A stretch of DNA of 64,000 bases from Paraphysomonas bandaiensis. Its lineage: Eukaryota; Protista; Chrysophyceae. The translations under genes and the position numbers were made by a program. The notes beneath the pieces were generated by a model. That model made no database searches and was not told the DNA's origin. It saw only the letters and a program-made list of their open reading frames with translations. Shown one piece after another: positions 1 to 26,240 of this stretch. Every line of letters starts with the position of its first letter. The stretch's first letter is position 1. The stretch spans positions 186,001 through 250,000 of the forward strand of contig CBFFRP010000371.1 in assembly GCA_965644295.1 (NCBI GenBank), given 5' to 3'.

Positions 1-293
1 GTGGCCGGATGCAAGCATATTTCAAATAATTTTGGATGAATATGGTGATGTTGACGTCAGCGATGATGGATCAGAGGATGAGGACGAGGTGGATTTTTAT
101 TAGCTATAAGCAGTTGTTACTTACTAATACTAAAAATTGAATCTACGGATGTGTTTACTTACTGCTTAGTCATACTAATATATTGCAATATATTGTAATT
201 GTGTTGTTGAGCCTGCTTAAAATCTCCATCAACAATAGTATTGATAGAACGCTAACTTACAATAGTATTGCAATATATTGTTTCCTAGCCCTG
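1..293 (+). mobile_element. hAT-like DNA transposon right end (transposase C-terminal tail, subterminal TATTGCAATA motifs, terminus CTAGCCCTG)
   Basis: 1-306 matches 13490-13795 and is homologous to 63801-64000, which follows a hAT dimerisation-like coding remnant. The terminus reads CAGGGCTAG on the minus strand. Confidence 0.7.
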
Positions 294-880
294 ATCTGGA
301 GGTGTACCGCAAGGGCTATTTTACGCCAGGAGGATGAACATACAGCCTTTCTAGATTTCGCTACGGTCGATGGTAAAACTGGTGGGGTTTTTGAAAGATC
401 GATAGTCACTATACGCAGTACGCACTGGCGTTAGCTCTACAGGAAATCGATGATCATGAATCGGATCTAAGTCGTCCATCGACGGAATTCAATAAAATTA
501 GTGTTTCAAAGTCTGGCACACCATTGTTTCCAACCAGAGCTGACGCAGCACGGCATATTCAAAGTAGCGATAGATCGCTGCAGAAGAACTGAGTTTAGCC
601 CTTCAAGGAAGTGATAATGTTTAAGAATGGCGTTGCTGTGTTACCAGATGGGTCAAGGGTTTCCGAGCACGACTGATTGCTGGATGGTTTATTGAATGGA
701 ATTTCGCTAAGGAAATTGATGGTGTAGGAGATTTAGATTCCGCCTGGGTTGACGGTAAGAGTTATTTTAAGCAATTTTAATCAGCAAGTTGTTGTGAGGA
801 ATCCAATCCTTTAAAAATCATGAAAACTAGAAGTAATTGCTATAGAGATTGTTTTTCACTTTAACTGTAATGAAATTGTA
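294..880 (+). pseudogene. Deleted remnant of an LRR multi-TM receptor paralog, interrupted by ~370 bp of unrelated sequence
   Basis: 295-342 encodes SGGVPQGLFYARRMNI (cf. ~10815-10862), then jumps to TAFLDFATVDGKTGGVFE (cf. 12761-12814). 770-880 matches the stop and 3' flank at ~12830-12925. Confidence 0.75.
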
Positions 881-891
881 CGCAGTATAAT

Positions 892-1208
892 CCCTCAACA
901 AAGTCGGACTCGCACCTTTTCGTGGTGTTCTGGGGGATAAGTACCGGATATATTTCTCCGGTAAACTAAGGCGAGCCGCATATATATAGTCAGAAAATAT
1001 TGTTGTTCTGCCCACTCATATAGCCTAATGCATGTTGTGTGGTACAAGGGGCACTAGTGAGTTACTTACAAGTTGTGTACTGTGTATAGACAACATTGGG
1101 CCTTGACAAATTAACAGGCATCTGGGTATGGCCCCACCTCAAGGTCATCCGGGGTATGAGGCTGCCTACTGAAGCCAAACATCCGGGCTGTTCACCTTAA
1201 GGCCACAA
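892..1208 (+). mobile_element. Ribozyme-headed retroposon, 5' part; 3' part appears to resume at ~2320-2506
   Basis: Starts CCCTCAACAAAGTCGGACTCGCACC and is colinear with 20801-21120. Confidence 0.8.
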
Positions 1209-1872
1209 AGGGAATGTATATAATCTGATTATTTAGCAATATAGGCATGTAAGTGTTTAAACTATAAACAGAAATCTATCTAATACTTTAATACTAATAT
1301 CCACCAATAGTGTCTGTTCATTCATATATACACTAATTGAGTTATTAAGCCGTGAGCTCTATTACAACAACATGACTTCAGAAGTTGTATTAAGATTCAC
1401 ATGCTATTTACTAGTAGCTGAAGGCTCATTCATGTATTTTCTAGTATTATTGTCTAAATAAGTATGGAATTGTTTTACAAATTACAGCCTGGCCTAAACG
1501 AACTGAACTTTCATATTATTTCACTCTCATAATACCATCACGCACCATTAATCTGCAATTCAAGCCGTGAAAAGTGTCAATGATCTTTTTCAAAGGTCAC
1601 AACCACACAAGGAGTGAAAATATTTCAATAGCATCCACGATGTCCTATACTAATGAATACACCCTCACGTATCCCTTTGATGTACAATGCAGAGTGAAGT
1701 GGTACACAGAATTACGAAAAACGTTTTAATTCGGGAAATTTCTATAATTGGGAGTTCTCTGTACCATGTATAATATCGCTCTCCCTGTCGACGTAAACGA
1801 GCCTGCTGGTGCAATCAATGTTCACAAATATGACAACTGTATATTATTACCCTTTCTTATCATTTCAATAGA

Positions 1873-1900
1873 TTAGGGTTAGGGTTAGGGTTAGGGTTAG
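1873..1900 (+). repeat. Interstitial telomere-type repeat (TTAGGG)x4.7
   Basis: Read directly. Confidence 0.9.
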
Positions 1901-2319
1901 TCAGCGGGTGAAAAGTTAGCAACAGAGCATGTCCGTCAAGTGTAAATTTGTGAATGAGGTGAATTCAACATATGTCTATGACATTATTAGCCAGGAATTT
2001 TTGAGAGCCAAAGACTAAAAGGTGTATCTTACAACGTTCAATAATTGAAATGTTGGGAGAGAGCTTACCCTTACAATAGTGTCATACCACTACGATTTTG
2101 ATTGCCTAAATACATAGAGTTATACAGTTTGTACTAGTTGTGTGGTTGGAGCATATGGTTGTGTGCATATTGTAAGCATTACTTTCTGCAATTGTTATCA
2201 CTCATTGATACAGAATCTCCTCCACGAAGTCCTACCCCAAGGGGTGTCCCCTGACTAACCCCATCTACACTTTCAAGACTCACGTCTATAGTCTATAGAG
2301 ATCTTCTACACATACAAGA

Positions 2320-2506
2320 ACTGAAGTGGTCGCGCCTTGGTGACTTGCGGCGACGCACAAGCAGCTTCTGTAGCGACACATAGTAGGATATGAGGATTTG
2401 TGTTAGTTAGTTACAGGTAGAAGTCGATCTAGCTTGACTAGTCTTCATCTAACTACTTATCCGGTGTTGGTTCTTGACGCCCACTGCTAATAATAAGACT
2501 TTCAAT
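2320..2506 (+). mobile_element. 3' part of the ribozyme-headed retroposon
   Basis: Colinear with 21128-21310; ends GCTAATAATAAGACTTTCAAT. Confidence 0.7.
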
Positions 2507-2674
2507 ATTGCAATTATCACAATTCTTAATCAGGGCCAACAAAAGGCAGGGATTAATAGCTCACCCAAGGAGGCATCCACACTTACATTCAATATTGCAA
2601 TTATCACAATTCTTAATCAGGGCCAACAAAAGGCAGGGATTAATAGCTCACCCAAGGAGTCATCCACACTTACA
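2501..2674. repeat. Tandem duplication, 2 x 87 bp
   Basis: TTCAATATTGCAATTATCAC...CATCCACACTTACA occurs twice with one mismatch. Confidence 0.9.
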
Positions 2675-2893
2675 TACACCAGCAAATGTCAATTGGTATA
2701 TAACACAGTTGACTATAGATCGATGTATTCTATGTTGATATCATATCGTGTTGCCTTAGTATACGTTTATGTATTCAGGTACAATAGTCGCCCTACATGA
2801 CACCTGCGAGACAACATACCTATGTAGCTCCACTCTCTAGGCTATCTACAGTTATTCCACATAAAGGCATGTGCAACAAATTATATTCTATAT

Positions 2894-3376
2894 CTACTTT
2901 GTGCTCTCGGGTTCCTGATCTGGTTCAGTTTTTTCCAGGGATGGAGGAATCTGACTAAGTGGTACAAGTACTAAATCATGTTTGAAGAGCTCCGGAATAA
3001 CCGATACTATCAATTGATCCTCTCTATCCGGATGTATTAATTTAACTTTTGTTTCTGTTTTTTTAACATATCCATATTGCCATTTTGTTAAATCATTCTT
3101 TGGACGATCATATAAATTTGGTAATCTGGACATAATAAATAATGCTTCTTGATAAAGTAAACTCCTTCTATTCATATGATTTGATGTGTTGTATTGTATC
3201 ATAGTTCTTAACATAATAAAATTAACTTTTCTTGCATCAATTTGTATTTCACCAATAGATGGACTGAGACCAGTAGGGAAATCATCAACTAGATATCCAT
3301 GTGAGTGTGTAACAGGCATGTTTTGACCATATACACGAATTGTTAAACGAATATAACGATTACTTCTGTTTTCCAT
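2894..3376 (-). CDS. Hypothetical protein, 160 aa
   Basis: Uninterrupted ATG-stop ORF with protein-like composition in AT-rich DNA; no domain recognised. Confidence 0.55.
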   Translation of the reverse strand: MENRSNRYIRLTIRVYGQNMPVTHSHGYLVDDFPTGLSPSIGEIQIDARKVNFIMLRTMIQYNTSNHMNRRSLLYQEALFIMSRLPNLYDRPKNDLTKWQYGYVKKTETKVKLIHPDREDQLIVSVIPELFKHDLVLVPLSQIPPSLEKTEPDQEPESTK

Positions 3377-3462
3377 TGTACGAATAGGAGAGAGAGGTGT
3401 GATAGTAGTGAGGGAAAGGAATTGAGATGGAGATAGAGTTGTAACATAGATCGTTAACTGTT

Positions 3463-3739
3463 ACATACATACATACCTACATACATACCTACATACCTAC
3501 ATACATACCTACATACATACATACATACATACATACATACATACATACATACATACATACATACATACATACATACATACATACATACATACATACATGC
3601 ATACATACATACATACATACATACATACATACATACATACATACATACATACATACATACATACATACATACATACATACATACATACATACATACATAC
3701 ATACATACATACATACATGCATACATACATACATACATA
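3463..3739 (+). repeat. (CATA)n microsatellite, left flank of the Ginger-like element
   Basis: Read directly. Confidence 0.97.
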
Positions 3740-3990
3740 TGTTACGACCCGTGAGAAAAATGTGCCAGTCGATGAACTGGCAGTGCCAGTTCATCGACTG
3801 GCAGTTTTTGACTATCACTCAAAAACCCACCAAGAAAGTGAGCCCGTCAGTGAAGTGGCTTATCCAGCCGTGTTTTTTTTCATTCCACCCACATACCATC
3901 GTAAGATATCGTAGTTGATGATTATCGCTCAATGCAACAGCCTGATAGTAATATAAGTGCTACATATATCATTGTATCAAACAAGAAGGA

Positions 3991-4800
3991 ATGACATCGG
4001 TGGTTAAAACTGTCTCATCAGGGAGCACTGTACGACCAGAAGTTGCATCGTCAGTAGACGACAACACTAGATCTATCACTGATTCCATTAAAATTGAAGA
4101 ACACAAACGACTGTTCTATCTGAATGCACAAAACGCTTTCGCAAATTCAATTAAAATTTTCTATCAGTCGAAATACCTTGAGATCGTCGAGTCGATGAAA
4201 TCATTTGACTCCAAGCCTCATAGGAACCGCTCCTGTCTAGACTACCGATGGCTCCTGTTGCAGTATTGGTAAATGAGCACGGTGATACTCCATCAAGAGG
4301 GGCGAAAAGTAAAGCAGTGAGTGCCGCACTAGCTGAACAATGCGAAAGGATGAAAAGATTTTCCACGTCTGGCACTCCAACCGACGAGGCGGAAGTCCTA
4401 CAGGTGGGTAGTGTTGTTTTAGTCAAACCACATCAGGTGGACCGAGGACAAGTTGATGAAATCAGGTTTCCAGTTGTTGTTGTTGAGGTTACCCCCAATG
4501 AATTACTTCGTCTGTACGCTCCCGGGGGAGTTTTAAACTCGTGTTATAACCGATCAGATCTGATTCACGAGCCAAATAAGACCCCTGCTTCATACCAACG
4601 TCATCTTGGAAACTATGAGAACTGGAGAAATTGAAGACTATATCAGAGAGAGAAGCTGCAACTATGTTTTCTCCATCCCTTGGACAGGGGTTTAGTAATT
4701 GTAGTTGCAAGGGTAAGTGCAACAGTAATAAATGTGTGTGCAAGAAGAATGGATTTCTCTGTAACTAGGTGCCACAAAAGCAATTTGCTTGCGTATTGTA
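3991..4800 (+). pseudogene. Frameshifted transposase remnant with KRBA2/Ginger-like C-terminus
   Basis: VGSVVLVKPHQVDRGQVDEIRFPVVVVEV...GVLNSCYNRSDL, then in another frame GQGFSNCSCKGKCNSNKCVCKKNGFLCN (Cys-rich tail). No DDE core seen. Confidence 0.65.
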
Positions 4801-4884
4801 ACAAGTAGTTGGTGCCATAGTAAACTACAGACTACTACTTAACTGAGTAGAAAAACAACCTTAACAAGTAACATGAATCTTATT

Positions 4885-6196
4885 TGGTACTGGTTGCATG
4901 AATCTTATTAGCAACTAGTGATATATAAATCGCTATTTATTAACATCATCAGTACATCAGCTCTAAGTATTTTAGTAGCTATTTACCTTAATATTGTGTC
5001 CACTGTCTGCAGATGATATATGTAATGAATAGAGTGTAGAAAGCCTATCACATAATAGCCATATTATTGAGTAGATCTTGATTCATATAGAGTCGATATT
5101 CATAATAATTGTACATATTCAAACATGGAATATGTACAAGCGAAAGCATATACAATAGAGAGCTCATAGTATAAAATAACCCCATAGCTGGTTACTACAA
5201 GTAACATGAATATTATTTGCTACTAGTGATATAAACTAACATCACTAGTACATCAGTTATAACTAATGTAATCAGTTGTTATCGTACAGCCTATAAGGAG
5301 TATCCGCTGTCATCATATATGTAATGAATATAGAGTATCATCTGTACAATAGTACTACATTAATTAAAAACATCAGTATATCAGTTATAAGTAATTTAGT
5401 CACTATTTACCTTGTTATCGTGTCCACTGTATGGGGAAGTGGACCAACTAATGTCCCCCAGGGACACAGCACTCTGCAGTTGATGTAACGCACATACTGG
5501 AAGAATTCCTCACCACGGGTTAATGGCACCGTCGAAGATCCGATGCGAACTTACTCACAGACATTGGTCCAAAGCTAGGAGATATTACAGACCCCAACCA
5601 CCAATGGGACCTACATCAATACATCCTCAGGCGAGACAGCACGTACGCTACACAAACGCAGCGAGACCCGCAGTGGAACGAGGCTCCCACACAAACTCCA
5701 TCCAATCCGCACCCATAACTCCCCTAACACTACATCTCTTTCCCAGACCGCATACGCGAAACGGTATACGTCTGGAACAAATCCTATGCAATGGGAAGAA
5801 ATCGAGTCAAAAGCAAAACCGGGAATGACCAGACAACAGCTGCCGCATGCATAGACTGTAGAATCACCAATCAGAGAATATGACAAACCAAGTTAGTAAG
5901 ACTATACATAGCTTCTAGTCACAACCGTTCCCATGTAAAAATAAGATATTCTTATGTCTTATCCATGCTCTCATGAAGAAGGAAGTAGCACTGAAGAGGG
6001 ATACAGATATCTATCTTGATACTGAAGGCTGGTAGGCTGGAATAGCATCTTGTGGGCTAATAATCAGGAGCTCTTATGATACTAGTTATGAGATGCTGTC
6101 TACGCTGGGAATCCGAGTGGACTTGCTGTATACTTGACTGTATTTCCCGTATATCGTTTCCTTTCAACATCATCAAACCAGTCGATGAACTGGCAG
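4885..6196 (+). repeat. Left arm of a 1312-bp inverted duplication (partner 8262-9573)
   Basis: Reverse complement of 8262-9573 on spot checks; identical 101-aa and 91-aa ORFs are called on opposite strands. Confidence 0.95.
5430..5885 (+). pseudogene. Non-LTR retrotransposon ORF C-terminal fragment inside the Ginger-like element (mirror copy ~8573-9028, minus)
   Basis: Encodes VWNKSYAMGRNRVKSK...AACIDC, similar to MWNKSFSIGKNRAKATFSDCG in 19474-19947. Confidence 0.55.
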
Positions 6197-7665
6197 TTTA
6201 TGTTGAACATCATTTTAGCCAATGGTACAAGATTATATATAGATTCTGGAAGAGATCCTGTTAGCCAGTTTTGGTCCCCATATAAGGATACCAAGTTGGT
6301 TAAGTTTCCTATAGAAGACGGAAGCGAGGAAGAAAAGAAATTCGAGCTCAGACTCACACTCTTTAACGCAGTCATCATTCCGAAATCGACCGGAAGACTA
6401 TTGGTGAAATAGTTATCAGAAATGTCCATATACTCCAATGATGTGAGCATGGAAAGACCATCAGGAAGCTTTCCAGTTAATGCATTGTCATAAAAGTAAA
6501 GCCTATCTACTAATTTCAGGTTGGATATCATGGAGGATACTGTACCAGAGAGCAAATTAGTGGACAGATAGAGTCTGCCCAAGTGGTTGGACTCGTAAAT
6601 TGAATCTGGAATATGTCCTGTGAATAAATTACCATCTAACCCTAAATAGTGAAGTTGCGATAGATTTCTCAATGAAAACAAATTTCCAGTGAGTGCATTT
6701 TTCGACAGTCTTAACTCACTTACTTCAACGAGATTCCCAACAGAGTGTGGTAGTGATCCATAGATACCTACTTGTTCCAAGGCCAAATATTCAAGTTTCG
6801 AAAGAGATCCAATGTTCTCAAGTAGTGTACCATGAATGGAATTAAAAGATAAGTCCAAAAACGTTAAGTCGTGCAACAGCAAAACATTTGAGGGAAAGGT
6901 ACAATTTAAATAGTTAGCCCAGTGGTTGAGGGTTTGCATTCTCTCCCAGTCGCCTATTTTGCAAGGTCCAGTTAAACGGTTTGACCGAAATGAAATATAA
7001 TCCAGATTAGACAATCGCAATATACACTCCGGGATTGTTCCATATATATGATTATATGACAAATCCAAATGCGTGAGTTTAGTACCAGAACATAAATCGG
7101 AGTCTTCAATGGCACTAAATATCCCTTCCACTAAACGGAGTTGCTTTAAATTTGGCAGTTCAAATACTAATGACGGTATGGCACCTGACAATGTCGTGAT
7201 ATCAAGATCTAGAGTTTCGAGAAGCTGTAATTTCATGATACTGTGCGGCAATGTCCCAACTATTTTGTGGTTAGTTTGTAATCTCAAATACGTGAGTTGG
7301 GATAAGTTTCCAATCTCATATGGAAGACTGCCCGCTAATTCATAGTCATCTAAATACAACTCAACTATATGGCAGGTCGTGTTACTATCATCGGTGCAGT
7401 TCTCGGGTGGATTCGAGCACTGAATGCCCTGCCAGACAGTGTGATTGTCGTTACAGGGGTTGATTTCAGTGAGGATTGTATTAAAATGCCATCGAGCTCC
7501 ATATGACTCATTTCTCCACAACCACTCATCTCCATGAGTGTCATTATACAGGGCCCATAGGGCATCAATCTCCTCTACAGGTACTGGAGAAGAAAGCGTG
7601 GATTGTGTGGAGATAAGGAGTAGGATCCCTGTGGTTAGTATAATGGACTGCATGTTTATCAGCAA
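6197..7665 (-). pseudogene. N-terminal half (signal peptide, Cys cap, plant-type LRRs) of LRR receptor copy 1, inverted relative to its C-terminal half
   Basis: Highly similar to the first ~490 aa of ORF 22909-25662; stops at LAKMMFNIN, where the paralog continues YLSGSLC. Confidence 0.9.
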
Positions 7666-7830
7666 CTAACACCTACACGCATACTCATACATAAGGCTCC
7701 TATACGACATCTCACACATGATGAGAGTGAAGTGAAGTGAAGTGAAGACGAAGTCTAGAAGTGTTTGAGGTGCAGCAGTGCACATAAGCACATCTAACAA
7801 CAGGCAGGACTGCTGTATACCAATCAACGT
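7666..7830 (-). promoter_or_regulatory. Upstream/5' region shared by both LRR receptor copies, including a short pentamer repeat
   Basis: Near-identical to 25663-25823. Confidence 0.5.
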
Positions 7831-7927
7831 TCTGTATATTTGGTATATACGGTAGATTTGTACGTACAATACTGGTAGGAATCCTACTGTACAATATGTG
7901 TACAAAAATTTTCACCATATCCTACTC

Positions 7928-8217
7928 ATGTATGTATGTAGGTAGGTAGGTATATATATACGTATGTACGTACGTATGTATGTATGTATGTATGTATGTA
8001 TGTATGTATGTTGTATGTATGTATGTATGTATGTATGTATGTATGTATGTATGTATGTATGTATGTATGTATGTATGTATGTATGTATGTATGTATGTAT
8101 GTATGTATGTATGTATGTATGTATGTATGTATGTATGTATGTATGTATGTATGTATGTATGTATGTATGTATGTATGTATGTATGTATGTATGTATGTAT
8201 GTATGTATGTATGTATG
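7928..8217 (+). repeat. (TATG)n microsatellite; inverted original right flank of the Ginger-like element
   Basis: Read directly; abuts the terminus at 8218. Confidence 0.97.
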
Positions 8218-9573
8218 TGTTACGACCCGTGAGAAAAATAAACCAGTCGATGAACTGGCAGCTGCCAGTTCATCGACTGGTTTGATGATGTTGAAAGGAA
8301 ACGATATACGGGAAATACAGTCAAGTATACAGCAAGTCCACTCGGATTCCCAGCGTAGACAGCATCTCATAACTAGTATCATAAGAGCTCCTGATTATTA
8401 GCCCACAAGATGCTATTCCAGCCTACCAGCCTTCAGTATCAAGATAGATATCTGTATCCCTCTTCAGTGCTACTTCCTTCTTCATGAGAGCATGGATAAG
8501 ACATAAGAATATCTTATTTTTACATGGGAACGGTTGTGACTAGAAGCTATGTATAGTCTTACTAACTTGGTTTGTCATATTCTCTGATTGGTGATTCTAC
8601 AGTCTATGCATGCGGCAGCTGTTGTCTGGTCATTCCCGGTTTTGCTTTTGACTCGATTTCTTCCCATTGCATAGGATTTGTTCCAGACGTATACCGTTTC
8701 GCGTATGCGGTCTGGGAAAGAGATGTAGTGTTAGGGGAGTTATGGGTGCGGATTGGATGGAGTTTGTGTGGGAGCCTCGTTCCACTGCGGGTCTCGCTGC
8801 GTTTGTGTAGCGTACGTGCTGTCTCGCCTGAGGATGTATTGATGTAGGTCCCATTGGTGGTTGGGGTCTGTAATATCTCCTAGCTTTGGACCAATGTCTG
8901 TGAGTAAGTTCGCATCGGATCTTCGACGGTGCCATTAACCCGTGGTGAGGAATTCTTCCAGTATGTGCGTTACATCAACTGCAGAGTGCTGTGTCCCTGG
9001 GGGACATTAGTTGGTCCACTTCCCCATACAGTGGACACGATAACAAGGTAAATAGTGACTAAATTACTTATAACTGATATACTGATGTTTTTAATTAATG
9101 TAGTACTATTGTACAGATGATACTCTATATTCATTACATATATGATGACAGCGGATACTCCTTATAGGCTGTACGATAACAACTGATTACATTAGTTATA
9201 ACTGATGTACTAGTGATGTTAGTTTATATCACTAGTAGCAAATAATATTCATGTTACTTGTAGTAACCAGCTATGGGGTTATTTTATACTATGAGCTCTC
9301 TATTGTATATGCTTTCGCTTGTACATATTCCATGTTTGAATATGTACAATTATTATGAATATCGACTCTATATGAATCAAGATCTACTCAATAATATGGC
9401 TATTATGTGATAGGCTTTCTACACTCTATTCATTACATATATCATCTGCAGACAGTGGACACAATATTAAGGTAAATAGCTACTAAAATACTTAGAGCTG
9501 ATGTACTGATGATGTTAATAAATAGCGATTTATATATCACTAGTTGCTAATAAGATTCATGCAACCAGTACCA
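8218..9573 (-). mobile_element. Right end of the Ginger-like element (TIR, 44-bp palindrome 8240-8283, internal sequence), inverted
   Basis: TGTTACGACCCGTGAGAAAAA matches 3740; 8262-9573 is the reverse complement of 4885-6196. Confidence 0.8.
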
Positions 9574-12500
9574 GTAGGTCATTGTGCGGTGATATTGGCC
9601 GCCTTACCCGTGTGAATTACGTTGACCTCACTGATAATGCAATAACCGGACCTATACCATCATCAATAGCGAATATGTCCTCACTACGGTATTTTGTTCT
9701 CCGCAACAACCGCATCACATCCACCCTTCCACTTTCACTGACGACCATGACATTCTTGCAAAATTTAGAATTAACATCGAATATGATATCAGGTCCGCTA
9801 CCAGCATATATTGGCGTGTCCCTTAGGTACTTGTATGTTGGTGATAATTACTTGACGGGAAGCATACCTTCTTCTCTATTTCCTGACATGTCGTCGTTGA
9901 TCCATTTACAGCTCACTGATAACTACTTGACATCTACTATTCCGACATCTATTAGTTCATTGTCCAATCTCATATACCTTTATCTCGGGGGCAATAAGTT
10001 CACGGGGAAATTAGAGGAGGGTATTACTGAGTTGTATCGTTTGCAAGATGTCGTTCTGGATACGAACTCTCTTTCAGGTTCTGTGCCTGCGTCTCTTTCA
10101 CAACTTACTCTCCTAAATTTTCTTCAGTTGCACCATAATAATTTTGAAGGGACGTTGCCATCATCGCTGAGTAACCTTCAGCAGTTGCGTGTGCTTCAAG
10201 TAAACAACAATGAGATTTCAGGATATGTGTCCCACATATTTGACTCTCCTCTCCTCAGAAACCTTGTGAATGTAGATATGAGTACGAATCGATTTAGCGG
10301 AATGGTGCCGCAGGATCTGTTCATGATTCCCAGTATTCAGACGATTGCATTGAGTTCGAATTGTTTTGAAGGAACACTTCCTTTATCAATGTGTAATGCA
10401 TCTCAACTCAGTGTGATTTCAATGGATGGATTGCGAGCTGCGCGCGATTGTCCTCGAACTTTTAGACTTCCTTTTTCAGGAGCTCTAATATCACTTTCCA
10501 CACACACTGCTGGTACTCTTCCCAGTTGTCTCTGGGAACTCCCCAATCTGAAAGTACTCCATGTGGCCGCGAATTTGCTCACTGGAAATCTTAAAGTAGA
10601 TCGTATTACTCCAACACTGTTGAATGTGAGTCTTGCTCATAATCACTTGGAAGGAACTATTCCCGATGCAGTTGATAAACATTACTTTCAAACACTCGAT
10701 CTATCTAACAACAAGATCACTGGAGTTGCCAGTAACAGATATTATCCTGATGTTGTCAAAAATGATTCAGATTCGGTTTTTATGACGAAACTGACCTTAA
10801 TAGTGAACCGATTGTCTGGAGGTGTACCGCGAGGACTATCTTACGCCAGGAGGATAAATATACTCACTGGAAATTTGTTTGGGTGTGACGATTTACCCTC
10901 GCATGACCCCCATAGGAGTGAGTACAACTGTGGCTCAATAGAAATGGATGAGTCGCTATATGTTCTTCTTGCTGCTGTGGTGGCGATAGCTGTAATCGGC
11001 GGAACTCCGTACCTATTTTGGTTACGGCGTCGCGGAGAAGCCTCTGGTATCAGTGATTCTGACATACTAGAAGCAGACAAGGATAATAATATATCCCTCC
11101 CTGCTCTGTACCGCCTTGTACAAATATCTCTCTCTCAGGCTAAACTATTACCGTGGGACGTAATGCCCTATTTAAAAGCCTTTTTGTGTATGCTTGACGC
11201 ATTTCAGTACTACACAATTCTTATTGCCAGTTGCGGTGTAGTTTTTTGTCTTCCTCTATATGTACTCAAGATAATTGCGGATGAGAGCGAGGGAGTTGGA
11301 ATTGTAACGCATACTCACACGTACCGATGGATACTAACTGCAGGATTTATCACTGGTCCGATTCCAGCTACCATGCTTCTCGTTGCTTGGTCTGTAGGTG
11401 CCACTATATTGGTTTTAGGGCTGCGTCAATCTGTATGTAATTCCCAACGCAAAGTGAAAATTGAGCACACGTCGAGTAGCTACGAAAATGAATTAAATAG
11501 TTCTACCGTGGTTCGGTCACGGTATAACTACCCGCGAGTTGCTGCCTTAGTAATGTTTAATACGATCATCGTGGGCACTGTTAATGCTCTGTACGTGTAT
11601 TCCTCTACTATACATATCACGTCCGCGATACGACTTGCAATTCAGTTCGCTGTAGCCATATTTAAGGTATAAACTATCTATCCTCTATAATTATTATTCT
11701 AATGTGTACGTTGAAGCTCTTCTGGAACTTTGCAATAGTTCCATCGCTTGTTCTTCCATTTATCGACAGTCCCCGGCAGCGTGCACGACTAAAAGTACTT
11801 ATTCTTTTGATGAACAGTATAATTGCCCCCCTTTTTGTACTAGCAGTCTCGGGTCCATCGTGCTTTCGTGATTTGTTTTTTCTGCCTCCGACATTGTCAT
11901 CATCATACAGTTATGAAGAGTGTGTAGCCTTCTCGTTGTCATCTGTTACAGTTTGTGACGAGTTTGAAACTGTGGTATCTACCACTGACCCGTTCCATCC
12001 TCCTTTCAATTACAACAATCTCTGCACCTCAAATGTCATCACTGCGTATGTTCCGGTTTACATATATACTTACTCTTTCCTTCTACTTCTTCCGTGCGTA
12101 CTACTTGTAATATATAAATATGCTCGCTGGAGTGATTTGCCTGTGTGGATAGTCAAGTATACTCCTATGATTCTCTGGCCATTTCGACTATCATCCTCAG
12201 GAGAGTATGTACACACTTCAGATTGTGAAGACCATATGTTAGAGGCACATTTGACAAAGTTGAAGTTATTAACGAGTCATTTCCTACGAAGTGATATGGT
12301 AGTATCGTCTTTCGCTCACCACCTTGCAGTTCTATTGTCATTTGGGTTACTAAGCCCTGTCCTAACTGTTGAAATTGCAGCTGCATTGTGCTTATCGACA
12401 TTCCAGTGGCGATTTTTCATTGGAAGATTTTTGCTTCATCGCTCTCATTCTCATGGTGTCAGTGTATCTGCAGATGACAGAGAAGCACCACACCATATTG

Positions 12501-12871
12501 CCAATCCGCTACATGATCGTTCCGTTATTCTCAGGGATGAGAGTCTGAAAAAGCTGAACTTTGCTGTCGAAGAGGCTGCGAATTCGTTTGTTAGTTGTGT
12601 CGGACCTGTGATGTGTGTTACGTCGATGTTTATATGTTCGCTCTGTTGGGATATTGTCAGTGATAGACGTGGTTGGCAAGTAGGAATTTATGTACCTGTG
12701 TTTAGCTTTGGAACACTTGCAATTCTATTTACGCTAGTTTATCTTCGTTTCAAACCGACTACAGCATTTCTAGATTTCACTACGGGTGATGGTAAAACTG
12801 ATGGAGTTTTTGAACTGGAGCTTCGACAAAGCAATTGGAATCAACAAGATGTGAGTAATCCGATCCTGTAA
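9574..12871 (+). pseudogene. C-terminal half of LRR receptor copy 1: LRRs plus multi-pass TM domain, no kinase; intron 11667-11716
   Basis: ORFs 9582-11672 and 11702-12871 join in frame via a 50-nt GT-AG intron (IFK|LFW); many hydrophobic segments. Confidence 0.88.
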
Positions 12872-13046
12872 AAATCTTAACAAAATAGATATTCTTTTTC
12901 ACCTTCACTGTAATGAAATTATTACTTTTATTAATTATTTCAGTTGAGTGATACAATATCTGGATATTATTATTAGTAATTAATTATTTCTGGATATATA
13001 TGCAGTTTATACGTTTATACATATTGTCACGTATAAATGGCGTACA

Positions 13047-13189: not shown

Positions 13190-13782
13190 CATGTAGTATG
13201 TACTTCCAATACATGTGAAAAATAAGATTTAAGGTTAGTCTTGATATTTAGTAAGGATATACTTGGTATTATTAGAGATAAAGATTGAACGATAAGGCCT
13301 AATAGTATAATAGCAAGACACATTTGAGCAGAGCGTTAGCACCACACAGGTGCAGGGATATACATGAATCAATGACTCCTAATAGTGAACGCCGCTCAGC
13401 GCAGCTAAACTTATCATTTCAGTGTTGCGCAAAAGTATGCATCCTTCTACACTTAATATGCTGTTGTTTCTGAAAGCTAATCGACAGTTGTGGCCGGATG
13501 CAAGCATATTTCAAATAATTTTGGATGAATATGGTGATGTTGACGTCAGCGATGATGGATCAGAGGATGAGGACGAGGTGGATTTTTATTAGCTATAAGC
13601 AGTTGTTACTTACTAATACTAAAAATTGAATCTACGGATGTGTTTACTTACTGCTTAGTCATACTAATATATTGCAATATATTGTAATTGTGTTGTTGAG
13701 CCTGCTTAAAATCTCCATCAACAATAGTATTGATAGAACGCTAACTTACAATAGTATTGCAATATATTGTTTCCTAGCCCTG
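13190..13782 (+). mobile_element. hAT-like transposon right end inserted in an LRR remnant
   Basis: Homologous to 63670-64000; 13490-13795 matches 1-306, including the LRR junction ATCTGGAGGTGTA. Confidence 0.7.
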
Positions 13783-14696
13783 ATCTGGAGGTGTAATCTT
13801 CTAATGGTTTAGATATTTTATTAATATTATCAAGATTGTTTATGTAACGATCATTCCAACCATCCGTTAGAGTACAAGTAACGGATCGCTTTCATCTTCT
13901 ATACTATAGTCTGAAAATCTTTCTAATAGAGATCTCTTTTTATTTTCTGGTTTCTAATGCTTCATTGTCTGGTTGTCATTCTTATTATGCTGCTCGTAGT
14001 AGCATCAACTGCTCTCATAGTATGACTATAATGATCCAAGATACAGTCCAAGGAGTGACTAAATACCATTACAAATATACAAAACCAGGGGTTTATAGTA
14101 TAAATAATGTAATCTGTGAAAGAAAATCAGGATATATAGTGCGATTGGAATAGAGGAAGTGGCTGATAGGATGTACTGCTGCATAGAGTACGCCCCTACC
14201 CATATTAGTACTATATTCAATAGTACGGTTCGTAGTGATGGCAACGTATTATGACGTACTACAAATCGTATGAACACCCCCCCATACTCTGCTGTACCAT
14301 ACATACTATACCACTGTCGTATACCATACATATACACACACACCACCGCACCATACATATACTGCTGTATATACCACACACACCGTACATACTGCTGTAT
14401 ATACATACATACATATATACAGTATATGTATATATACATACCACACACACCATACATATATACATATATACACATACACATATCATCATTATCCATACAT
14501 AGAACAGCCATTGCTATCATAGCCCATCTAATTAAATAACTCACACCAATATACACATCCATATCCTCTACACACCATGTAATGAACCTATAAAGATATA
14601 TCATATCATGTACACAACATTACAGTGATATATACATACATACACACGTATATACATACATACATACATATATATATACATCTATTATTAACAATA

Positions 14697-21441: not shown

Positions 21442-24400
21442 CTAAATGATAGGGTTGCTGACAGCGTGCTGATTCATATTGCTTTGTTGAAACTCCACTT
21501 CAAAGTGTCCATCAATTTTACCGTCGCTATTGGCCAAATCTCGAACTGAAATTTCATACTGCAATGCTATGTTCGGTTTGAAACGAAGATAAACTAACGT
21601 AAATAGAATTGCAAGTGTTCCAAAGCTAAACACAGGTACATAAATTCCTACCTGCCAACCACGTCTATCACTGACAATATCCCAACAGAGCAAACATATG
21701 AACATCGACGTAACACACATCACAGGTCCAACACAACTAACAAACGAATTCGCAGCCTCTTCGACAGCAAAATTCAGTTTTTTCAGACTCTCATCCCTGA
21801 GAATAACGGAACGATCATGTAGCGGATTGGCAATATGGTGTGGTGCTTCTCTGTTATCTGCAGATACACTGACACCATGAGAATGAGAGCGATGAAGCAA
21901 AAATCTTCCAATGAAAAATCGCCACTGGATTGTCGATAAGCACAATGCAGCTGCAATTTCAACAGTTAGGACAGGGCTTAGTAACCCAAATGACAATAGA
22001 ACTGCAAGGTGGTGAGCGAAAGACGATACTACCATATCACTTCGTAGGAAATGACTCGTTAATAACTTCAACTTTGTCAAATGTGCTTCTAACATATGGT
22101 CTTCACAATCTGAAGTGTGTACATACTCTCCTGAGGATGATAGTCGAAATGGCCAGAGAATCATAGGAGTATACTTGACTATCCACACAGGCAAATCACT
22201 CCAGCGAGCATATTTATATATTACAAGTAGTACGCACGGAAGAAGTAGAAGGAAAGAGAAAGTATATATGTAAACCGGAACATACGCAGTGATGACATTT
22301 GAGGTGCAGAGATTGTTGTAATTGAAAGGAGGATGGAACGGGTCAGTGGTAGATACCACAGTTTCAAACTCGTCACAAACTGTAACAGATGACAACGAGA
22401 AGGCTACACACTCTTCATAACTGTATGATGATGACAATGTCGGAGGCAGAAAAAACAAATCACGAAAGCACGATGGACCCGAGACTGCTAGTACAAAAAG
22501 GGGGGCAATTATACTGTTCATCAAAAGAATAAGTACTTTTAGTCGTGCACGCTGCCGGGGACTGTCGATAAATGGAAGAACAAGCGATGGAACTATTGCA
22601 AAGTTCCAGAAGAGCTTCAACATACATATTAGAATAATAATTATAGAGGATAGTTTATACCTTAAATATGGCTAAAGCGAACTGAATTGCAAGTCGTATC
22701 GCGGAAGTGATATATATAGTAGAGGAATACACGTACAGAGCATTAACAGCGCCCACGATGATCGTATTAAACATTACTAAGGCAGTAACTCGCGGGTAGT
22801 TATACCGTGACCGAACCACGGTAGAACTATTTAATTCATTTTCGTAACTACTCGACGTGTGCTCAATTTTCACTTTGCGTTGGGCATTACATACAGATTG
22901 ACGCAGCCCTAAAACCAATATAGCCCTCGCGGTACACCTCCAGACAATCGGTTCACTATTAAGGTCAGTTTCGTCATAAAAACCGTATCTGAGTCATTTT
23001 TGACAACGTCAGGATAATATCTGTTACTGGCAACTCCAGTGATCTTGTTGTTATATAGATCGAGTGTTTGAAAGTAATGTTTATCAACTGCATCGGGAAT
23101 AGTTCCTTCCAAGTGATTATGAGCAAGACTCACATTCAACAGTGTTGGAGTAATATGTTCTACTTTAAGATTTCCAGTGAGCAAATTCGCGGCCACATGG
23201 AGTACTTTCAGATTGGGGAGTTCCCAGAGACAGCTGGGAAGAGTACCAGCAGTGAGAGTGGAAAGTGATATTAGAGCTCCTGAAAAAGGAAGTCTAAAAG
23301 TTCGAGGACAATCGCGCGCAGCTCGCAATCCATCCATTGAAATCACACTAAGTTGAGATGCATTACACATTGATAAAGGAAGTGTTCCTTCAAAACAATT
23401 CGAACTCAATGCAATCGTCTGAATACTGGGAATCATGAACAGATCCTGCGGCACCATTCCGCTAAATCGATTCGTACTCATATCTACATTCACAAGGTTT
23501 CTGAAGAGAGGTGAGTCAAATATGTGGGACACATGTCCTGAAAGCTCATTGTTGTTTACTTGAAGCACACGCAACTGCTGAAGGTTACTCAGCGATGATG
23601 GCAACGTCCCTTCAAAATTATTATTGTGCAACTGAAGAAAATTTAGGAGAGTAAGTTGTGAAAGAGACGCAGGCACAGAACCTGAAAGAGAGTTCGTATC
23701 CAGAACTACATCTTGCAAACGATACAACTCAGTAATACCCTCCTCTAATTTCCCCGTGAACTTATTGCCCCCGAGATAAAGGTATATGAGATTGGACAAT
23801 GAACTAATAGATGTCGGAATAGTAGATGTCAAGTAGTTATCAGTGAGCTGTAAATGGATCAACGACGACATGTCAGGAAATAGAGAAGAAGGTATGCTTC
23901 CCGTCAAGTAATTATCACCAACATACAAGTACCTAAGGGACACGCCAATATAAACTGGTAGCAGACCTGATATCATATTCGATGTTAATTCTAAACTTTG
24001 CAAGAATGTCATGGTCGTCAGTGAAAGTGGAAGGGTGGATGTGATGCGGTTGTTGCGGAGAACAAAATACCGTAGTGAGGACATATTCGCTATTGATGAT
24101 GGTATCGGCCCTGTCATTGCATTATCAGTGAGGTCAACATAATTCAGACGGGCAAGGCGACCAATATCACTGCATAATGACCCACTTAGGTAATTGCTGT
24201 TTAAAATAATTTTAGCCAATGGTACAAGATTATATATAGATTCTGGAAGAGATCCTGTTAGCCAGTTTTGGTCCCCATATAAAGATACCAAGTTGGTTAA
24301 GCTTCCTATAGAAGACGGAAGCGAGGAAGATAAGAAATTCGAGCTCAGGCTCATACTCTCTAATGCAGTCATCATTCCGAGATCACCTGGAAGACTATTG

Positions 24401-25662
24401 GTGAAATAGTTATCAGAAGTGTCCATATACTCCAATGATATGAGCATGGAAAGTCCACCAGGAAGTTTTCCTGTTAATGCATTGTCATAAAAATAAAGTC
24501 TTTTCATTGATTCGAGGTTGGATATCATAGAGGATACTGTACCAGAGAGCAAATTGGTGGACAGGTAAAGTCTGTACAAGCGGCTAAACTCGTAAATTGA
24601 ATCTGGAATATATCCAGTGAATAAATTACCATCTAATCCTAAATACTGAAGTTGCGATAGATTTCTCAATGAAAACAAATTTCCAGTGAGTGCATTTTTC
24701 GACAGTCTTAACTCACTTACTTCAACGAGATTCCCAAGAGAGAGCGGTAGTGACCCACGGATACCAACTTCTTCCAAGGCCAAAAATTCAAGCCTCGAAA
24801 GAGATCCAATGTTCTCAGGTAGTGTACCATAAATGGAATTAAAAGATAAGTCCAAATAAGTTAACTCGTACAACAGCAAAACATTAGTGGGAAAGGTACA
24901 ATTTAAAAAGTTTCCCCAGTAGTTGAGGGTTTGCGTTCTCGCCCAGTCGCCTATTTTGCAAGGTCCAGTTAAACGGTTTGACTGAAATGAAATATACTCC
25001 AGATTAGACAATCGCAATATAAACTCCGGAATTGTTCCATATATATGATTATATGACAAATCCAAATGCGTGAGTTTAATACCAGAATATAAATCGGAGT
25101 CTTCAATGGCACTAAAAATCCCTTCCACTAAACGGAGCTGCTTTAAATTTGGCAGTTCAAATACCAATGACGGTATGGCACCTGACAATTTTGAGGTTTC
25201 AAGATCTAGAGTTTCGAGAAGCTGTAATTTCATGATACTGTGCGGCAATGTCCCAACTAGTTCGTAGTTATTTCCCAACCTCAAATACGTGAGTTGGGAT
25301 AAGTTTCCAATCTCATATGGAAGACTTCCCGTTAATTCATAGTCATCTAAATACAACTCAACTATATGGCAGGTCGTGTTACTATCATCGGTGCAGTTCT
25401 CGGGTGGATTCGAGCACTGAATGCCCTGCCAGACAGTGTGATTGTCGTTACAGGGGTTGATTTCAGTGAGGATTGTATTAAAATGCCATCGAGCTCCATA
25501 TGACTCATTTCTCCACAACCACTCATCTCCATGAGTGTCATTATACAGGGCCCATAGGGCATCAATCTCCTCTACAGGTACTGGAGAAGAAAGCGTGGAT
25601 AGTGTGGAGATAAGGAGTAGGATCCCTGTGGTTCGTATAATGGACTGCATGTTTATTAGCAA
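21442..25662 (-). pseudogene. LRR multi-TM receptor copy 2; a 568-bp deletion leaves a 917-aa LRR-only ORF with the TM region out of frame
   Basis: At ~22920, GGVPRGL is joined to sequence equivalent to 11404 via CTAT microhomology; the downstream exons are near-identical to copy 1. Confidence 0.88.
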
Positions 25663-26240
25663 CTAACACCTACACGCATACTCATACATAAGGCTCCTAT
25701 ACGACATCTCACACATGAGAGTGAAGTGAAGTGAAGTGAAGACGAAGTCTAGAAGTGTTTAAGGTGCAGCAGTGCACATCAGCGCATCTAACAACAGGCA
25801 GGACTGCTGTATACCAATCAACGTATATATACTCTACAAACGAGTGTGGGGTATACTGCATGTATTTGTGTGCTGTACAATGATCTAAATACTAGTACTC
25901 TGTACAATGTGTGTACAATAAGATATGTACGGAGTATGTTCAGCAGTATAGTATGTAACAAAATACAAGGTTTAGCACAAAACCTAGATATTTATTCTGC
26001 ACTCTATTAATCTTGTACAAATATGGGGATATTCTGCACCAAATATCCTCCAACTATCCTCCTGCACATACTGTATATATATACTATATACTATACACGT
26101 TGAGCTCAACATGTCCTGAGTAAGATTTGTAGAAGTTAATAGAAAGTGCTTCAGGTTACTATACTAACATCCAACTATATACATACAATGAAATATACAT
26201 ACACTTACATATCATTATATTCCAATACAAACAAAGAAAG

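Follow-up and report, generated by a model that had tools for sequence, protein, structure and literature searches.

The stretch analysed here, referred to as the window, comprises 64,000 nucleotides of the chrysophyte Paraphysomonas bandaiensis (assembly GCA_965644295.1, contig CBFFRP010000371.1, positions 186,001 to 250,000 of the forward strand; the contig is abbreviated below as C371) and contains a leucine-rich repeat (LRR) receptor gene, designated gene 2, that is split into two oppositely oriented halves within and beside a large inverted repeat. The left arm of this repeat (arm A, 4885-6196, plus strand) and its inverted copy (arm A', 8262-9573, minus strand) are 1312 nt long each and flank a 2065-nt spacer, as an earlier note on this DNA had described; alignment of the two arms confirmed the coordinates and revealed them to be 100% complementary. 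The spacer carries, on the minus strand, the N-terminal half of gene 2 (N-half, 6197-7665), encoding a signal peptide and LRRs, and the upstream (promoter) region of the gene (7666-7899), with homology to an intact paralog, gene 1, up to position 7783. The minus-strand end of the N-half open reading frame (ORF) directly adjoins the end of arm A at 6196, which consists of one arm of a palindrome, and the ORF extends 32 codons into arm A, to a stop at 6100. On the other side, the plus-strand continuation of the gene (C-half, 9573-12871) directly follows the end of arm A' at 9573. It encodes further LRRs and a multi-pass membrane part, and contains a 49-nt candidate intron at 11668-11716 (AAG/GTATAA...GAAG/, with slashes at the splice sites) placed from reading frame and GT-AG signals only.

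Both halves of gene 2 present Pfam matches to LRR_8, LRR_1 and LRR_14. When each half was compared separately, the N-half protein matched residues 1-488 of the paralog encoded at 22912-25662 (gene 3; 21563-25777, minus strand) with 89% identity, and the C-half protein matched residues 493-916 of the same paralog with 96% identity. The two halves hence correspond to consecutive parts of one protein, in agreement with the earlier note, which had read them as the N- and C-terminal halves of a single gene on opposite strands. Searches of the whole assembly with both halves identified three copies of the gene, all of them on C371. The remaining copy, gene 1, is intact and lies just upstream of the window (C371:175192-180539), 18.8 kb upstream of gene 2. 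A word search of public proteins with the intact gene 1 ORF returned only LRR proteins with at most 33% identity, and no independent allele.

Gene 1 aligns first to window positions 7783 down to 6192, in inverted orientation and with 95.5% identity, and then to positions 9573 up to 13326 with 99.0% identity. Leaving aside a retrotransposon insertion, its downstream DNA remains collinear up to position 13795. Genes 1 and 2 differ at 0-4 positions per 200 nt on either side of the break, and their mismatches cluster in the middle of the N-half. The equally low mismatch counts on both sides indicate a common history of the two halves, as parts of a once contiguous gene. Gene 1 and gene 3 both run uninterrupted through the position of the gene 2 break.

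The comparison with gene 1 defines the breakpoints at the level of single bases. The sequence of gene 1 across the site is AACATAAACTACCTAAGTGGG; of this, AACATAAACT and AGTAGG remain in gene 2 on the two sides of the break, so that 5-8 nt have been lost, matching the loss of about two codons that had been anticipated. At the first novel junction (J1, 6194-6197), the minus-strand gene break is joined to the palindrome arm through a microhomology of 2 nt (AG/CT), or 4 of 5 nt if imperfect pairing is allowed. The break on this side falls at 6194-6196, that is, on the axis of the palindrome or up to 2 nt to its left. This refines the previous placement of the left break at the symmetry axis, and locates it within the 4-nt loop of the hairpin that the palindrome can form. 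At the second novel junction (J2, 9573/9574), an internal arm position equivalent to 4885 is joined to the C-half, with a strict microhomology of 1 nt (A). The TACC microhomology previously proposed for this junction is indeed present in the arm end and in the intact paralogs, but a join through TACC would have retained the TA that is missing from gene 2. In the gene, the two novel junctions lie within 5-8 nt, an indication that it was broken once, and the location of the other breakpoint in the hairpin loop points to the hairpin as either a second lesion or a landing site.

A search of the whole assembly with the arm sequence returned more than ten long copies on other contigs, with 93-100% identity. 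Likewise, a 21-mer adjoining the palindrome occurs 26 times in the genome with 0-2 mismatches, mostly as inverted pairs 2.5-4.5 kb apart. These copies outline a transposon with terminal inverted repeats (TIRs), of which full copies were identified on contigs C92, C285, C357, C358, C460 and C400, 95-99.8% identical to the copy in the window. The window copy, which is internally deleted, spans 3740-6196 on the plus strand and has its cut end on the axis of the right subterminal hairpin; the final 44 nt, which make up the outer part of the right TIR, lie inverted at 8218-8261 on the minus strand. The element is thus about 2.5 kb long, and the arm of the inverted repeat is its right-hand 1312 nt. 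Its left TIR (3740-3803) has a hairpin of its own, with two 20-nt arms around 1 nt that fold into a 19-bp stem and a 3-nt loop. The gene 2 locus contains a single left and a single right transposon terminus. The element is flanked on the left by an (ACAT)n microsatellite (3454-3739), the same microsatellite in which other family copies reside, and its right flank is a (TGTA)n microsatellite (7900-8217) that is now inverted with respect to 3454-3739. The two microsatellite flanks hence lie on opposite strands here, whereas in the other copies checked they are on the same strand.

All element copies examined have the termini TGTTACG...CGTAACA. Target site duplications (TSDs) of 4 bp were observed in four of the five complete copies, TATG on C92, TATA on C357 and CATA on C285 and C358, the pair on C370 being mismatched; of these, TATG and TATA are the informative ones, since CATA pairs inside the microsatellite carry no information. 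When restored to its ancestral order, the window copy has CATA/CATA flanks. A 4.5-kb copy on C370 contains an ORF of 591 residues with a match to the Pfam rve integrase domain (35.2 bits, against a cut-off of 32.6), and most of this integrase ORF is deleted from the window copy. Ginger transposons are characterised by TGTNR termini, 4-bp TSDs, a Gypsy-like DDE integrase and CCGG or RTATAY targets (Bao, Kapitonov and Jurka 2010, PMC2836005). The family described here resembles them in its TIRs of about 65 nt, its TGTNR-type termini (TGTTA), its 4-bp TSDs and the putative rve-type integrase ORF of the long copy, and differs in residing in (ACAT)n/(TGTA)n microsatellites instead of CCGG or RTATAY sites and in bearing hairpins with 20-bp stems in its TIRs, a feature unmentioned in PMC2836005. 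As judged from its sequence, the DNA of the arms belongs to a multi-copy, integrase-type (Ginger-like) TIR transposon.

Copies of this family lie almost always within (ACAT)n/(TGTA)n microsatellites, in both orientations, which suggests a target specificity for the ACAT/TGTA tetranucleotide repeat. An 8.6-kb copy on C370 has been enlarged by a nested retroelement (C370:50118-53330) with an ORF containing RVT_1 and RNase H domains. Inside the arm, a stretch of about 387 nt (window 5488-5859) has more than 25 copies at about 80% identity over many contigs, and represents a distinct repeat of higher copy number, which the transposon either harbours as a nested insertion or has captured. No Rfam match, internal repeats or convincing ORF were detected in this nested repeat (5400-5950), and an Rfam scan of 3300-9700 returned nothing above the gathering score, the microRNA-like matches corresponding to the microsatellite and the hairpin.

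A hairpin module is present within each TIR, and the right end of all copies consists of a palindrome arm, two central bases and the opposite arm. Most copies have CC or GG as central bases, a single asymmetric centre read in either orientation; the window and C400 copies have GC there, which makes their palindrome perfect. In the window this perfect 44-bp palindrome occupies 8240-8283, with its axis at 8261/8262, just as the earlier note had it. Folded as single-stranded DNA it yields a 20-bp stem with a 4-nt loop (AGCT) and a free energy of -24.2 kcal/mol. By comparison with the other copies, the palindrome is native to the transposon family and predates the rearrangement, instead of being its product. 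Several family copies carry deletions centred on hairpin palindromes, and the hairpin-bearing ends of the Ginger-like family are for this reason regarded as fragile sites in this genome. Genome-wide, 5 of the 47 palindrome arms lack a partner; four of these five correspond to small deletions inside elements, and only J1 joins an arm to foreign DNA.

The sibling of the window copy on C400 has lost its outer right TIR (C400:176820-177200): it ends 18 nt past the palindrome axis and is followed by (CATA)n/(CCTA)n, constituting another lesion beside the same hairpin. The possibility that this 99.8% identical copy represents the other allele of the locus was considered and rejected, as no similarity to the window was seen along 40 kb of its flanks, and it is therefore a separate insertion.

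Other transposon copies align without interruption over the positions equivalent to 8261/8262 and 4884/4885. Arm A is accordingly contiguous with 3740-4884, and arm A' with the outer 44 nt of the right TIR, as in any other copy; both of these boundaries are ancestral, which leaves J1 and J2 as the only novel junctions. Each arm is identical to a single 1312-nt stretch of one transposon copy, a sequence present once at one ancestral breakpoint. Given the comparison with gene 1 and with the other transposon copies, the ancestral order would have been an (ACAT)n microsatellite, the complete transposon (3740-6196 plus the 44 nt), a second (ACAT)n tract, the upstream region, and the N-half and C-half of gene 2 in succession on the plus strand. 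Ancestral gene 2 would thus have been a collinear tandem duplicate of gene 1. Two sites would then have been broken, the apical loop of the right-TIR hairpin and gene 2, the latter losing 5-8 nt. In the derived order, the 3.4-kb piece extending from 4885 to the gene break would have been inverted, with a second copy of its first 1312 nt staying in place. An equivalent description, after flipping the middle segment, is that a 1312-nt inverted copy of the right part of the transposon would have been inserted at one gene break.

The most probable explanation of the locus is hence that of a recent, one-off structural mutation, and not a device: an inversion with inverted duplication, broken at the loop of a transposon hairpin. 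The earlier note had proposed a hairpin-nick or template-switch inversion with duplication, and collinearity with gene 1 upholds the inversion, the inverted duplication and the break at the palindrome centre; the transposon origin of the arms and the ancestral nature of 8261/8262 had gone unrecognised. The event is considered young, to the extent that sequence can date it, because all ORFs of both halves remain open and no differences separate the arms, and one-off because J1 alone, among the five orphan palindrome arms, joins foreign DNA.

Two routes could lead to this structure. Under a template switch, a 3' end at the gene break would anneal through 2 nt to the single-stranded hairpin loop, the transposon would be copied backwards over 1312 nt, and the other gene end would then be recaptured through 1 nt. 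This would first yield the collinear isomer, which recombination between the perfect arms would convert into the assembled one. Alternatively, two nicks staggered by 1312 nt, one within the loop, would be processed by fill-in and end joining, which would produce the assembled order in one step. The sequence fits both routes, and we lean towards a repair or replication template switch. Several observations weigh against this explanation of the locus or loosen it. The assembled order and both junctions rest on one assembly; the template-switch route yields the other isomer first and requires a later flip, while the staggered-nick route requires 1.3 kb of duplex to be unwound; and microhomologies as short as 2 nt and 1 nt are compatible with either route. 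Furthermore, a single nucleotide of the 1312 distinguishes the C400 sibling from the arm, so that the absence of differences between the arms dates the event only loosely.

Inverted duplications have been reported at 17 of 29 Drosophila inversions and explained by a staggered-break model (Ranz et al. 2007, PMC1885836), whose authors themselves concede the difficulty of unwinding long duplexes (PMC1885836). The gene 2 locus shares with these inversions (PMC1885836) a segment bounded by inverted copies of a sequence that was once single-copy at one ancestral breakpoint, junctions with little or no homology, and a gene disrupted at a breakpoint. It differs from them in its very small scale (3.4 kb inverted), in having a duplication at one breakpoint only, the other having lost 5-8 nt, and in that the duplication consists of transposon DNA, with one nick site falling in the loop of a hairpin.

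Breakage at palindrome centres and template-switch inverted duplications are known from human palindromic AT-rich repeat (PATRR) translocations, from hairpin-primed palindrome formation in yeast, and from fork stalling and template switching or microhomology-mediated break-induced replication (FoSTeS/MMBIR). As in these foldback and template-switch processes, the break at gene 2 lies at the tip of a stable hairpin, the inverted copy is templated nearby on the same molecule, and the microhomology spans 1-2 nt. Here, in contrast, the outcome is a local, balanced structure with a 2065-nt spacer instead of a spacer-less palindrome, a dicentric or a translocation, and the palindrome is a TIR module of a transposon. 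The structure is therefore a small-scale case of two known kinds, inversion with inverted breakpoint duplication and palindrome-tip breakage, and does not constitute a new kind of system.

Among the alternatives, the one that survives best, though unlikely, is that of an assembly or sequencing artefact, in which the true locus would retain the ancestral order and chimeric hairpin reads or a wrong path through the repeats would have generated the inverted duplication. Polymerases are known to switch templates at palindromes in vitro, the identity of the arms is exactly 100%, and the region, set among near-identical tandem paralogs and young transposon copies, is difficult to assemble; moreover, no second haplotype of the gene 2 locus is present in the assembly. 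An artefact would nonetheless demand two independent chimeric junctions that lie within 5-8 nt in the gene and close into a balanced inversion, an outcome that a single biological break produces and that is not expected from random chimeras. The locus is, in addition, internal to a 291-kb contig, and simple foldback read artefacts produce palindromes without a spacer, not with one of 2065 nt.

It is considerably less likely that the inversion was mediated by transposition, with a second, inverted copy of the element inserting into the gene and ectopic recombination then taking place between the two copies. The arms do consist of transposon sequence, the family appears young and active, as illustrated by the 99.8% identical sibling on C400, and a copy of autonomous size with an rve integrase ORF exists. 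Nevertheless, neither junction corresponds to an element end: J1 coincides with the hairpin axis, 44 nt short of the right terminus, and J2 is internal, about 1.1 kb away from the left terminus. The gene break presents neither a TIR nor a 4-bp target duplication, but a loss of 5-8 nt, and the locus has a single right terminus.

The least credible alternative, to which we assign a very low probability, is that of a functional invertible cassette, in which recombination between the arms would flip the promoter and N-half to turn the receptor on and off, and splicing would remove the arm as an intron whenever the receptor is on. The earlier note had tentatively put forward such a switch, and three observations speak for it: perfect inverted repeats of 1.3 kb can recombine, all ORFs are still open, and a GT(TCAT)...TAG pair (donor after 8267, acceptor before 9578) restores the frame arithmetically, to read NCQSLC. 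The proposed intron, however, is speculative; it would be 1310 nt long, with a GTTCAT donor and no pyrimidine tract, unlike the inferred 49-nt intron with its canonical donor. The switch itself is not supported, given the identity of the arms, which places the same 1312 nt beside each gene half in either orientation, so that the immediate surroundings stay the same after a flip; in both orientations the N-half ORF meets a stop after 32 codons of arm sequence, and neither of them restores the gene. No site-specific recombinase is evident at the locus, although not every ORF in 1-13000 was scanned with Pfam, and the integrase ORF of the transposon is deleted in the window copy. The arrangement is also unique to gene 2, being absent from genes 1 and 3, and no other element of the family presents such a junction. 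In common with bacterial fim/hin-type invertons and with the flip-flop of plastids and the 2-micron plasmid, the locus has a promoter segment between perfect inverted repeats able to mediate inversion; compared with these systems, it has no evident dedicated recombinase and no conservation, the gene is intact in neither orientation, and its arms are 1.3 kb of transposon DNA, not short recombination sites. That the 2065-nt segment flips within a cell population, with the collinear isomer losing the arm as a long non-canonical intron and a full-length LRR-channel receptor made only in a subpopulation, is accordingly very improbable.

The three paralogs also differ in features that lie outside the rearrangement. 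In a mid-LRR stretch of the N-half (window 6600-7400, minus strand; alignment positions 400-1200), as many as 30 of 200 nt are mismatched among the paralogs, against near-identical flanks, a mosaic that suggests diversifying selection or patchy gene conversion among the three copies. Gene 3 has lost, at 22917-22923, about 555-560 nt that are kept in genes 1 and 2 (10843-11403 in gene 2). The edges of this deletion overlap by 7 nt and the long ORF of gene 3 (917 residues) ends there, and gene 3 may itself be damaged or differently spliced. Next to gene 1, a 5.3-kb Ty1/Copia-type long terminal repeat (LTR) retrotransposon (C371:180540-185833, window -5461 to -168) lies about 450 nt past the last long ORF of the gene. 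It has identical 294-bp LTRs, a target duplication of about 5 bp that corresponds to window 13322-13326, and ORFs in which Pfam identified rve and RVT_2 (199 bits) domains, a result that does not favour reading this stretch as a one-ended hAT insertion. The gene 2 copy does not carry the retrotransposon.

As a consequence of the rearrangement, gene 2 is split. At best it would encode a truncated secreted LRR protein of 521 residues, and it would otherwise be a very young pseudogene. Were the flipping real, it would amount to recombination-based on/off variation of a protist surface receptor, originating in a transposon hairpin accident, but the locus as read here reveals no new kind of regulatory system. 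It offers instead a clear case from nature, at base-pair resolution, of a transposon hairpin that would have seeded a local inversion and duplication and thereby killed a gene, with an ancestral state that can be reconstructed from an intact tandem copy just 18.8 kb away. In this manner, it would record how a tandem receptor family that diversifies rapidly has given rise to a very young pseudogene or to a truncated secreted LRR protein.

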